The notes below the pieces were generated by a model, which saw only the letters and a list, made by a program, of their open reading frames with translations, did not search any database and had not been told where the DNA came from. The position numbers and the translations under genes were made by a program. A stretch of DNA of 64,000 bases from Lytechinus pictus (taxonomy: Eukaryota): contig NC_087247.1 of assembly GCF_037042905.1 (NCBI RefSeq), positions 30,814,001 to 30,878,000 of the forward strand, written 5' to 3'. Of the stretch, positions 44,101 to 50,100 are shown piece after piece (position 1 is the first letter of the stretch; every line of letters begins with the position of its first letter).

Positions 44101-47100
44101 AATTTAATCCTAAATTAATTAAGCAGACTATTACGAATTGAAAATAATCTTTCTTTTATGAATTTCATCTCCCATTAACTTTGTACATGAGGTATGAGAA
44201 TGAGCCATTTTTGGCATGACATTGTCTCGTAAAAGTCATGTGGTCTCACAATGCCAAACCCACATGTCACAAATTTGATCTCAAATGGTGTACAAGACTT
44301 CAAAGAATCTTTGCGCATTCCAGAAAAATCGTGTGAAGTCCTTTTAGGTTTAATCCTTATTTATTCAGTAGTTTAAGATGCATTTCTTCATGCATTAGAA
44401 AAGAAAGAATCTTCAAATCAATTTTGCAAATTTCTGGCACCTTTTCCTCAGACCTTGCTCGAGGTGGTTACATCTGTGAGTTCCGCTGGGATCAGGGTGG
44501 AGAGTATAAGGGCCGCAAGTGGCAGAAGGATTTGCCTACCGACTGTGTGGTGAGTAAATAGTATGAAATAATACACATCATGGAGGGCATTAGTAAGAAT
44601 TATTCACTAGGTAACTATGGAACAGCTCTTACTATGCCTTGGGCATTTTGACTTTTTTAAAGGTAACAAGTGTGTGTAATTATATTAATGCTTGTGTAAT
44701 ATGATGTTTCTTATATGTTTTCAAAGAAAGTGATGTTGATCCTTGTAATTTGATAAACCATCCTCATCTCAAAACCATGATTGGTCAATAGAACTAGTCG
44801 TTAGTATTAGTCATTAGCAAATTTGCTTGTTAGCTAAAACAAAATGGCCCGAATTCACAAAGGTGGTTTTGAAAACCCACGGTTGAGTCCATGGTTTATG
44901 CAGATTTTCTGTATAAATTATGCTTATTTACCGCGTATATAAAAAAAAATGTCCAATGCTGATGCGCGCTTTTGTCACAGTGCGCCAAATTGACGCCTGT
45001 TGCCGTGGTTATGCACGCTATTTTATTCATGAGTCCGCTGTTTATTCATGAGTCCACTCTTCAAACAGTGGACTCATGAATAAAATAGCGTATCTAACCA
45101 TGGTAACGGGCGTCAATTTGGCGCACTGTGACAACAGCGCGCATCAGCATTGGACATTTTTTATACACACGCCCGATACGCGCCAAATTAAGCGTAATTT
45201 ATACAGGAAATCTGCATAAACCATGGATTCAACCTTGGGTTTTCAAAACCACCTTTGTGAATTTGGGCCAATAAGACTGGTAAAGTGAAAGAGTTCAGTT
45301 GGTTGTTTGATTAGGATTCATATCTCTGTTTTATGATATAATTGATAATATTGTGTATTTATATAGCTCATATCACGTTATCATCTAATGTTTCTATGCT
45401 TCCAAAACTACACTTTGGATATTATTACCCTGGCCTTGGCCTGGCCAGCCTTTATACACCACACAATTATTTAAAGCAATTCATTCCTGCCAGGTACCCA
45501 TTTACCTCACCTGGGTCAAGTGCAGCACAATTTGGATGAATTTCTTGCTGAGGGAAACATTGCCATGGTTGAGATTCAAACCCAAGTTCCTCTGATCGAA
45601 AGGCACTAGTTTATGATGCTCCCACACTTATTAAAGATATCTTCTCTATATATTTTTAGGATAGAACAAAAATTTAGATAGAGGTTAAAAAATATATATG
45701 TATTTTTTTAAAGGTGAAGATAACTTTTTTTAAAAGGTGATTCAAAATCTTATAGAAGAGTATTGTAAGTTCAATTTTGGGGGACTTATAACAATATCGT
45801 GTTTGAAAAATGTAATTATTTTATCCTGTAATTTTGTGTTCATTTCCTTGAGCAAATTTTCACAAACTCTTCTGTACTTATTTATTTCTGCAGCTTGTAC
45901 TCCATGCTCTATGCACCTATCTGGATTCCTGCCTTCCACCCCACCCTAAGCATCCAGATGGAAAAATCTTTACTGACCAATACTTCATGAAGATGCCTGA
46001 CAAACCAGGTACTTTTTAATTTGATTTTTATTTGTTTGTTTTCTTTCTGCATTTATATCATTTGTATAATAAGTTGATTGCTCTTTTGGACTTGAATCCC
46101 AGATAAAGTTGACCAAAAAAAAAATATATATATATATATATCATTCCAAACAAATATGATCCACCAAATTATTATAACATTCACAATGAGCAGGAGAGGA
46201 TTGTCATCATGTGCAGATTGTTTGAAAAAATGACCTGTTGGCTGTTTCTCATTCTAACCATTGTTCATGATATATGCCTGAATACATGAGAGCGTTTGAT
46301 AAAAGTACTTATTGGATGTTTTACCCAACAAAGTTTGTTTGATCTGACATTTACCATGGTAGCATTCAGACACTTGTCCCTCTCAGCTAATGAAAACCAA
46401 GGTAAGTTGTCAGATCTGACAACTTATGTTGGAAGGCTAATGTTGATGAAACACTTTTAGTGATGGTTCAAACTTTTGAAAATATGATGCCGCTTGATTG
46501 ACCAAGAGCACATTTTCCATAGAATTCTAGCAATTTTTTTGTAAGAAGTTTTAAATAACGAGCATTATTTTATTGTCAGATTGACAAATTTTTGTAAACT
46601 TGAATCTAAATTCATTTTTTGGATTAACAAATCTCCAGATTAATGAAGCTTCAGAATGTCAAAACTGCAGAGTATATAAACATTTGGAATAACAAGCTGT
46701 GACCGATGGTATTAAAAATTTTACCAAGCCCCTACATTCTGATCATCACATTTTTATGCAACACAAATTATCCAATCTTGATGTTTCATTGTTTTTGTAG
46801 ATCTGAAGAAGGAAAATTTGCTGCTCTTCCAATCCAAGATCAACCCACCTCACTACAAGGTTATACTTGGTGATGATACATGGGACCTACCAAAGGTTAG
46901 TTCAGTACAATCTTAGACACCCCCTCCCCCCTCACTACAAGGTTATACTTGGTGATGATGCATGGGACCTACCAAAGGTTAGTTCAATACAATCCTAGAC
47001 ACCTCCCCCCCCCCTCACTACAAGGTTATACTTGGTGATGATGCATGGGACCTACCAAAGGTTAGTTCAATACAATCCTAGACACTCCCCCCCCCCCTCA

Positions 47101-50100
47101 CTACAAACAAGGTTATACTTGGTGATGATACATGGGACCTACCAAAGGTTAGTTCAGTACATTCTTAGACACCCCCTCCCCTCCCTCACTACAAGGTTAT
47201 ACTTGGTGATGATACATGGGACCTCCCAAAGGTTAGTTCATTTCAATCCTAGACACCCCCCCCCCCCTCACTACAAGGTTATACTTGGTGATGATACATG
47301 GACCTACCAAAGGTTAGTTCATTTCAATCTTAGACCCCCCCCCCCTCGCTACAAGGTTATACTTGGTGATGATACATGGGACTTACCAAAGGTTAGTTCA
47401 GTACAATCTTAGACCCCCCCCCCTCACAGCAAGGTTATACTTGGTGATGATACATGGGACCTACTAAAGGTTAGTTCAGTACAATCCTAGACACTCCCCC
47501 CCCCTCACTACAAACAAGGTTATACTTGGTGATGATACATGGGACCTACTAAAGGTTAGTTCAATACAATCTTAGACACTCCCCCCCCCCTCACTACAAA
47601 CAAGGTTATACTTGGTGATGATACATGGGACCTACCAAAGGTTAGTTCAGTACATTCTTAGACACCCCCCTCCCTCTCACTACAAGGTTATACTTGGTGA
47701 TGATACATGGGACCTACCAAAGGTTAGTTCAATACAATCTTAGACACTCCCCCCCCCTCACTACAAACAAGGTTATACTTGGTGATGATACATGGGACCT
47801 ACTAAAGGTTAGTTCAATACAATCCTAGACACTCCCCCCCCCCCTCACTACAAACAAGGTTATACTTGGTGATGATACATGGGACCTACCAAAGGTTAGT
47901 TCAGTACATTCTTAGACACCCCCCTCCCTCTCACTACAAGGTTATACTTGGTGATGATACATGGGACCTCCCAAAGGTTAGTTCATTTCAATCCTAGACA
48001 CCCCCCCCCCTCACTACAAGGTTATACTTGGTGATGATACATGGACCTACCAAAGGTTAGTTCATTTCAATCTTAGACCCCCCCCTCGCTACAAGGTTAT
48101 ACTTGGTGATGATACATGGGACTTACCAAAGGTTAGTTCAGTACAATCTTAGACACCCCCCCCCCCTCACTACAAACAAGGTTATACTTGGTGATGATGC
48201 ATGGGACCTACCAAAGGTTAGTTCAGTACAATCTTAGACACCCCCCTCCCTCTCACTACAAGGTTATACTTGGTGATGATACATGGGACCTACTAAAGGT
48301 TAGTTCAGTACAATCTTAGACACTCCCCCCCCCTCACTACAAACAAGGTTATACTTGGTGATGATACATGGGACCTACTAAAGGTTAGTTCAATACAATC
48401 CTAGACACTCCCCCCCCCCCTCACTACAAACAAGGTTATACTTGGTGATGATACATGGGACCTACCAAAGGTTAGTTCAGTACATTCTTAGACACCCCCC
48501 TCCCTCTCACTACAAGGTTATACTTGGTGATGATACATGGGACCTACTAAAGGTTAGTTCAGTACAATCTTAGACACCCCCCTCCCTCTCACTACAAGGT
48601 TATACTTGGTGATGATACATGGGACCTCCCAAAGGTTAGTTCATTTCAATCCTAGACACCCCCCCCCCCCTCACTACAAGGTTATACTTGGTGATGATAC
48701 ATGGACCTACCAAAGGTTAGTTCATTTCAATCTTAGACCCCCCCCCTCGCTACAAGGTTATACTTGGTGATGATACATGGGACTTACCAAAGGTTAGTTC
48801 AGTACAATCTTAGACACCCCCCCCCCCTCACTACAAACAAGGTTATACTTGGTGATGATGCATGGGACCTACCAAAGGTTAGTTCAGTACAATCTTAGAC
48901 CCCCCCCCCCCCTCACAGCAAGGTTATACTTGGTGATGATACATGGGACCTACCAAAGGTTAGTTCAGTACAATCTTAGACCCCCCCCCCCTCACTACAA
49001 TGTTATACTTGGTGATGATACATGGGACCTACCAAAGGTTAGTTCAATACAATCTTAGACACCCCCCCCCCCCCTCACTACAAACAAGGTTATACTTGGT
49101 GATGATGCATGGGACCTACCAAAGGTTAGTTCAGTACAATCTTAGACACCCCCCTCCCTCTCACTACAAGGTTATACTTGGTGATGATGCATGGGACCTA
49201 CCAAAGGTTAGTTCAGTACAATCTTAGACCCCCCCCCCTCACTACAATGTTATACTTGGTGATGATACATGGGACCTACCAAAGGTTAGTTCAATACAAT
49301 CCTAGACACCCCCCCCCCCCCTCACTACAAACAAGGTTATACTTGGTGATGATGCATGGGACCTACCAAAGGTTAGTTCAGTACAATCTTAGACCCCCCC
49401 CCTCACTACAATGTTATACTTGGTGATGATACATGGGACCTACCAAAGGTTAGTTCAATACAATCTGAGACACCCCCCCCCCCTCACTACAAACAAGGTT
49501 ATACTTGGTGATGATGCATGGGACCTACCAAAGGTTAGTTCAGTACATTCTTAGACACCCCCTCCCCCCTCACTACAAGGTTATACTTGGTGATGATACA
49601 TGGGACCTACCAAAGGTTAGTTCAATACAATCTTAGACACCCCCCCCCCCATTACAATGTTATACTTGGTGATGATACATAGGACCTACCAAAGGTTAGT
49701 TCAGTACAATCCTAGACACCAACCCCCCCCCCCTCACTGCAAGGTTATACTTGGTTATGACACATGGGACTTCCAAAAGGTTAGTTCAGAACAATCCTAG
49801 ACCCCCCCTCACTGCAAGGTTTTACTCGGTGATAATACATGGGACCTACCAAATGTAACTAGTTCGATACACGCTTGGATTACTCGAGATGAATTTTAGG
49901 CCATAAATTGCTATTTTTTTCAGACAAGGCCACTTATCAAAGGGCTTTTTTTGTATTACAACTATAAAATGGCCACTAAACTACCTTAGGCCAGTGGAAG
50001 AGGCATTTAGGCCAATCAGTAAGGCATCAGAGGCCATTGCCTTGGGTGAGCTTAGATAAATTTGAAGAAAACAAAAATAACTTCTTGTTGATTACTCCGA

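Follow-up and report, generated by a model that had tools for sequence, protein, structure and literature searches.

We examined a window of 64,000 nucleotides (nt) from the sea urchin Lytechinus pictus (contig NC_087247.1, positions 30,814,001 to 30,878,000, read on the forward strand), which carries the gene TMEM209. In this gene the end of coding exon 11, its 5' splice site (donor) and the beginning of intron 11 are repeated in tandem over about 3 kilobases (kb), and a preliminary description had interpreted the repeats as an array of decoy donors. Here we describe the structure and the age of this array and the use of its donors in RNA. The features involved are as follows; all coordinates refer to the window, and the slash within a splice site marks the splice junction.

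46801 to 46895, + strand: coding exon 11 of the TMEM209-like gene, 95 nt (tblastn at 100% identity, PF09786, RNA on the + strand).
46893 to 46901, + strand: the genuine 5' splice site AAG/GTTAGT, the sole donor seen in use (RNA reads).
46896 to 50465, + strand: intron 11, 3,570 nt, GT to AG, holding the whole array (RNA joint).
46844 to 49853, + strand: minisatellite of 37 units of about 82 base pairs (bp), each closed by a poly-C tract (repeat finding, phasing, unit tree).
46975 to 49785, + strand: 35 intronic copies of AAG/GTTAGT, the first at 46975 and the last at 49777, without unambiguous use in RNA.
49568 to 49615, + strand: exon-like part of unit 34, the sole copy in the array that matches exon 11 exactly over its last 48 nt.
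49807 to 49896, + strand: terminal unit 37, degenerate, with the spoiled donor AAT/GTAACT, continuing into unique intron.
50466 to 50539, + strand: coding exon 12, 74 nt, followed by the donor GTAAGT (tblastn, RNA).
51638 to 51692, + strand: last coding exon, with the stop codon, which gives a junction downstream of any premature stop (tblastn).

The identity of the gene and the number of the exon, both proposed from the sequence, were confirmed by database searches. When exon 46801-46895 is joined to position 50466, the two exons encode a peptide of 56 amino acids that matched the TMEM209 family of Pfam (PF09786, CytochromB561_N) with an E value of 7.8e-12 and a score of 45.4 bits, above the curated cut-off of 27.3, over profile positions 502-554 of 571. 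In a search of 1.8 billion representatives, the peptide was 100% identical over the query to a protein of 582 amino acids, XP_054751757, named 'transmembrane protein 209-like [Lytechinus pictus]' by NCBI, and PF09786 was present in 16 of 16 close homologues. Mapping by tblastn placed 46801-46895 as the 11th of 13 coding exons. The annotated isoforms differ at the N-terminus only. The 618-residue isoform X1 was considered as a form with three inserts of 12 residues, a possibility that was discarded because the extra 36 residues constitute an N-terminal extension. A 673-residue match with three matched stretches (P0001) was likewise set aside as a vertebrate-like model with segmental repeats that are unrelated to the array. 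No array-derived insert was found among the NCBI isoforms or in the 90% protein cluster.

The anatomy of the array agreed with the preliminary description. Tandem Repeats Finder reported a period of 82 bp, 36.6 copies and 88% matches on the + strand between 46844 and 49853, together with a second, higher-order period of 409 bp. Phasing on a donor-free anchor gave 37 units of 75-90 nt, the typical unit of about 82 bp being composed of about 48-52 nt from the 3' end of exon 11, the donor AAG/GTTAGT and about 31 nt of intron. The motif AAGGTTAGT occurs 36 times in the array, at positions from 46893 to 49777; one of these is the genuine donor and the other 35 are intronic copies. The donor is thus kept in 36 of the 37 units, and unit 37 reads AAT/GTAACT. 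With head-to-tail units within the 10-100 bp range, in many copies and at a single locus, the array is a minisatellite by its structure, and it also belongs among the repeats that include a canonical donor. When a two-unit query was compared with the whole assembly of 812 megabases (Mb), all 22 matches fell inside the array; an origin of the unit from a dispersed repeat was consequently ruled out, given zero copies elsewhere. The higher-order structure consists of repeated blocks of 5 to 9 units, and several units are identical to each other (5 and 22; 10, 13 and 20; 12 and 19; 16 and 24; 17 and 28). Within the copies, the exon-like part has acquired missense changes, a frameshifting loss of 1 nt in three units and one stop, and open reading frames through the array are short and frame-hopping only. 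No known RNA family was found at E <= 0.1 in the region 45500-52500.

Translation past the first L. pictus donor gives VSSVQS followed by a TAG stop at 46914-46916, exactly as had been proposed. Since exon 12 begins at 50466 and the last exon at 51638, a stop in an extended exon 11 lies upstream of later junctions, and this part of the earlier argument also held.

The array is shared with a sister species. At the orthologous locus of Lytechinus variegatus (L009), an array at 15091-15615 is attached to the same exon end, with a period of 81 and 6.6 copies. The comparison of copy number between related species that had been suggested as a check therefore gave 7 units in L. variegatus and 37 in L. 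pictus. The L. variegatus array contains six AAG/GTTAGT donors, and its last unit reads AAG/GTAACT. In Strongylocentrotus purpuratus and Diadema setosum an intron is present at the same codon (466 nt with the donor GTGAGT, and 746 nt, respectively), with no repeat in either. In a tree of 44 units, the terminal units of L. pictus and L. variegatus were sisters with a support of 100/99, indicating that the array predates the split of the two species, and the internal units clustered by species. Mean unit divergence was 5.4% within L. pictus and 11.8% within L. variegatus. As intron 10 differs by about 10% between the two species, the value of 5.4% indicates that most of the expansion in L. pictus is younger than the species split. 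Judged from these comparisons, the array was born in the Lytechinus lineage, had reached at least two copies before the split and expanded separately afterwards. The expansion in L. pictus is mostly recent and also block-wise, as several units have an exact duplicate 3 to 17 units away. Unit 4 of L. variegatus does not differ from unit 1, even at the exonic allele, which shows that the real exon end and the copies have undergone exchange.

Two further claims of the preliminary description stood only in part when the species were compared. Microhomology between the exonic C-rich motif and an intronic poly-C had been proposed to have seeded the duplication. Poly-C is absent from the terminal unit and from the S. 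purpuratus intron, indicating that the C tract arose from the exonic ACCCACC where the duplicated segments meet, and grew thereafter; the exonic partner was thus supported, and a pre-existing intronic poly-C was not. The second claim was that use of any downstream donor would expose the transcript to nonsense-mediated mRNA decay (NMD). This applies to L. pictus, in which the TAG follows after six codons, but not to L. variegatus, in which the first two units are 81 and 78 nt long and stop-free (L009 15139-15300), so that read-through is open in frame to donors 2 and 3, adding 27 and 53 amino acids. From this comparison, the stop past the first donor is not a conserved safety feature.

To see which donor is joined to 50466, three stranded, ribo-depleted total-RNA runs from L. 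pictus, which represent steady-state RNA, were aligned together with transcript contigs to the region 46500-50700. The joint 46895 to 50466 was found in 36, 42 and 11 reads of the three runs (89 in total) and in one transcript contig of 3,583 nt. Sequencing depth was about 40-45 in the exon-11 bin, and about 60x over the exon itself, compared to 0-0.7 in every array bin, and it was exactly 0 in all three runs in the bin directly past the first donor. The array was absent from the assembled transcripts of every run, and in the indexed RNA runs the exon words were matched and the array words were not. These results demonstrate that only the first donor is in use at steady state and that the whole intron of 3,570 nt, array included, is removed.

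A second joint, from the donor of unit 34 (49615) to 50466, was supported by 10, 2 and 4 reads (16 in total). These reads reached at most 40, 26 and 35 nt into the array. They also carried a T>C change at 49594, which is homologous to the single-nucleotide polymorphism (SNP) 46874 T>C in exon 11, and they carried it in the same proportions as the exon, the counts for unit 34 and exon 11 being 5/8 and 29/60 in one animal and 4/4 and 17/17 in a second. The short overhang, the allele proportions and the fact that unit 34 is the only copy matching the full 48-mer together indicate that these are canonical-junction reads placed on the copy, and we therefore rejected them as mapping ties. No unambiguous read was thus left for any downstream donor in the three runs. 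Among the best-supported joints there was neither a 46895 to 49580 joint nor a 36-nt insertion, and there were no unit-to-unit joints, the intronic depth being nearly nil for seeing intermediates. The motif CAAG/GTTATA, a possible dual-specific AG/GT site, is present in 32 units.

Taken together, we consider that the array is probably a tolerated, Lytechinus-specific intronic minisatellite, a by-product of repeat expansion rather than a control device. It would have started as a tandem duplication of about 83 bp across the border between exon 11 and intron 11 of TMEM209, after the split from Strongylocentrotus and before the separation of L. pictus and L. variegatus. The two arrays would then have grown independently to 7 and 37 units, in L. 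pictus through unequal exchange of multi-unit blocks, with the poly-C/poly-G tracts at the junctions probably helping. The spliceosome would join the first donor to the acceptor at 50466, thereby removing the whole array; the extra copies are merely intron, because all of them lie downstream of the first donor.

With regard to why the first donor wins, which like the neutrality of the array we infer, the 36 donors are identical and differ only in their upstream context. The first is preceded by a real T-rich acceptor and by the unique 5' part of exon 11, which lies outside the repeat and contains the purine-rich stretch GAAGAAGGAAAA, whereas the copies are preceded by a poly-C tract. The first donor may thus win through exon definition, or through co-transcriptional commitment of the donor that is transcribed first. 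Commitment of this kind would fit with the finding that an upstream 5' splice site is held by U1 on the polymerase (PMC8316553). RNA secondary structure was ruled out as the cause, as the 9-mer of the first donor has a mean unpaired probability of 0.27 compared to 0.37 +/- 0.09 for the others. In model pre-mRNAs with duplicated identical 5' splice sites, the intron-proximal donor is used almost exclusively when the sites are separated by at least 45 nt (Hodson et al. 2012, PMC3413131). The urchin locus resembles these substrates from the Eperon laboratory in that strong donors of identical sequence compete, in tandem and at spacings above 45 nt, for one acceptor. However, TMEM209 uses the most intron-distal, first-transcribed donor, and it differs from them in having a full natural exon upstream and a distance of 0.7-3.5 kb to the acceptor. 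The classical intron-proximal rule does not fit this gene. The locus therefore offers a natural substrate for studying what lets the first donor prevail over its many identical copies in vivo, while short model substrates choose the last, and it shows that 35 perfect copies of a used donor at 82-nt spacing can be tolerated without visible effect on the mature mRNA.

The background rate of minisatellites is in line with a neutral origin. In a census of 200 kb sampled randomly from ten L. pictus chromosomes, arrays with a period of at least 10 and at least 3 copies occupied 6.0% of the bases, roughly one array per 9 kb, and the largest measured 1.8 kb. At such a coverage, arrays that span a splice junction are expected by chance. 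The TMEM209 gene has 24 splice sites in 22.7 kb; if splice sites are assumed from this density to occur every 1-3 kb genome-wide, and if the arrays are neutral, in the order of a thousand of them are expected to have been seeded across splice sites in the genome. The TMEM209 array, with its 3 kb, is larger than any in the sample, but not different in kind. For annotation, this means that in a genome with about 6% minisatellites exon-border arrays are to be expected, and that they should not be taken as regulatory without RNA evidence.

Three observations weigh against the array being a mere by-product. The RNA examined reflects the steady state only, and unproductive use of downstream donors followed by decay would escape it. 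For L. pictus, a single assembly provides the copy number. Finally, when the 42 internal units of the two species are taken together, no stretch but the donor 10-mer AAAGGTTAGT is free of change: 25 of the 62 alignable core columns vary, and the only unchanged windows of nine columns are AAAGGTTAG and AAGGTTAGT. The probability of an invariant window specified beforehand is about 0.006, or about 0.02 when rate heterogeneity among sites is taken into account. This hints at a constraint not expected of an array that is purely neutral, although the invariance could be due to chance in a homogenising array as well as to weak selection.

One explanation that would account for this invariance is that the intronic donors are kept by selection: U1 bound at each of them would keep the array silent, and loss of a donor would create a pseudo-exon of 118 nt with good splice sites and an in-frame stop. 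As long as the donor is present, the 36-nt spacing from AG to donor would be too short for exon definition. The exon-like part tolerates missense changes, a 1-nt deletion and a stop, whereas the donor is unchanged, and the internal AG has been lost from 4 units of L. pictus and has moved in 4 units of L. variegatus. On the other hand, the statistics are modest, and in an array that homogenises, mutations are not independent events. The real TMEM209 acceptors have T-rich rather than C-rich tracts, a branch-point consensus match was seen by eye in no unit, and the three runs gave no RNA evidence for use of a pseudo-acceptor. We therefore regard this explanation as unlikely. In its broader form, in which the 35 intronic donors are non-neutral and selected in both Lytechinus species, with U1 silencing either neighbouring cryptic acceptors or the whole array, the idea is slightly easier to accept but still doubtful. 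If this holds, the locus would be a 36-fold competition set up by nature and won by the donor transcribed first over its identical downstream rivals, contrary to the intron-proximal rule.

About equally unlikely is a role proposed in the preliminary description, namely that the array acts as a copy-number-dependent dial: some pre-mRNAs would be spliced from the 35 downstream donors, gain the stop at 46914 and be degraded by NMD, so that array length tunes TMEM209. The idea draws on the full donor consensus of all 35 copies and their unusually invariant core, on the in-frame stop crossed by every extension with two junctions downstream of it, and on the closest precedent known, which is human. 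The variable number tandem repeat (VNTR) in intron 18 of ABCA7 has a 25-bp unit, starts with the donor GT of exon 18 and has a donor GT in each unit (De Roeck et al. 2018, PMC5954066). About 2% of the ABCA7 transcripts retain one unit through the second donor, which is out of frame and NMD-prone, and VNTR length correlates with expression and with skipping of exon 19 (PMC5954066). The urchin array is of the same kind: in both, the repeat abuts a coding exon, starts at its canonical donor and carries the donor in its units, and the first donor is the one mainly used. Its unit is larger, however, at 82 bp, and takes in 48-52 nt of the coding exon as well as all 9 nt of the donor, as against 25 bp of purely intronic sequence. 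Length effects have been measured for ABCA7, where downstream donor use is measurable too; in the steady-state RNA of the urchin, neither an effect nor use of the downstream donors was seen. The 89 canonical reads against none that are unambiguous for another donor, and the lack of array coverage in ribo-depleted RNA, thus leave the dial unsupported. The logic of NMD does not carry over to L. variegatus, in which neither of the first two downstream donors is out of frame or preceded by a stop, and copy number differs five-fold between two species with near-identical proteins. L. variegatus is a convenient control, since with 7 units and the first two extra donors in frame, their use would be visible without an NMD block.

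The related suggestion that the array serves as a sink for U1, a small nuclear ribonucleoprotein (snRNP), was not supported by the same RNA, which showed the canonical joint only and no coverage of the array. It was also ruled out on quantity. A cell contains about a million copies of U1 snRNP, too many to be titrated by a few dozen sites on a pre-mRNA of modest expression.

It is very improbable that the units are occasionally included as in-frame cassette pseudo-exons of 36 nt, each adding a 12-residue copy to the protein. A C-rich tract with CAAG/ lies 36 nt upstream of the donor in 28 of the 35 intronic copies, and these 28 downstream units each contain a potential pseudo-exon that is open, in frame and flanked by AG and GT. 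The unit-34 reads, which extend 40 nt or less, come close to 36 plus 3 matching letters. Yet those reads carry exon-11 alleles in exon-11 proportions on the sole unit that is identical to the exon end, the corresponding joint or insertion is absent among the best-supported joints, and no such isoform occurs in the protein cluster. Nor is the frame conserved, as 4 of 6 L. variegatus units give a span of 35 nt instead of 36 from AG to donor. Multiplication of splice signals by tandem duplication is known from intron gain, where a segment that contains AGGT is duplicated (Hellsten et al. 2011, PMC3265369), and from the dual-specific AG/GT arrays of the polyubiquitin gene UBC (PMC10809524). The urchin unit is similar in having an internal CAAG/GT, but unlike in those systems, neither a new intron nor stochastic skipping of units was seen in TMEM209, and the duplicated signals are unused.

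That the array or its length arose by mis-assembly of long reads is equally hard to believe: array words were matched in no indexed DNA run and the copy number comes from a single assembly, but the variants are structured in higher-order blocks of units, the independent L. variegatus assembly contains orthologues of both the array and its terminal unit, and the ends of the intron are confirmed by RNA.

The RNA reads also gave information on variation in the exons. Variant sites were found at 46808, 46814, 46844, 46874 and 46889 in exon 11 and at 50486 in exon 12. The exon SNPs seen are all synonymous, which is consistent with a functional gene. A second exon-11 haplotype carries four linked synonymous changes within the 95 nt, and its letters A, G and T at the first three sites (46808, 46814 and 46844) are those of the L. 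variegatus exon, indicating either that the reference haplotype is derived or that the polymorphism is shared between the species. The change 50486 G>A was fixed in all three animals.

Elsewhere in the gene, two Logan transcript fragments of the TMEM209 product (P0154 and P0155) end in WIANLRQ followed by VCSRSNHLDDLHIVLFL, which looks like a retained intron after the exon that ends at 38488. In intron 12 (50558-50700), a short dispersed repeat starting with GGGCCCCGTCTTACAAAGAGTTACGACTGATCCAAT had an RNA depth of 400-870 on both strands compared to about 60 for the exons. To judge from its many variant letters and loose ends, it is a transcribed repeat family that is very abundant in L. pictus, and it has no Rfam match. 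A further tandem repeat, with a period of about 157-192 bp, lies in a TMEM209 intron of all four sea urchins examined (36136-37803 in L. pictus; L009 8165-9126; L030 7672-8728; L031 5979-6826). Its consensus contains direct repeats of the AGGTCAAAGGTCA type that resemble nuclear-receptor DR1 half-sites, and it is one of two things, a repeat family widespread in urchins or an intronic element that has been conserved. Finally, intron 8 contains at 42990-43783, next to a run of N at 41900-42088, a tandem duplication of 398 bp with 98% identity, which is very young.

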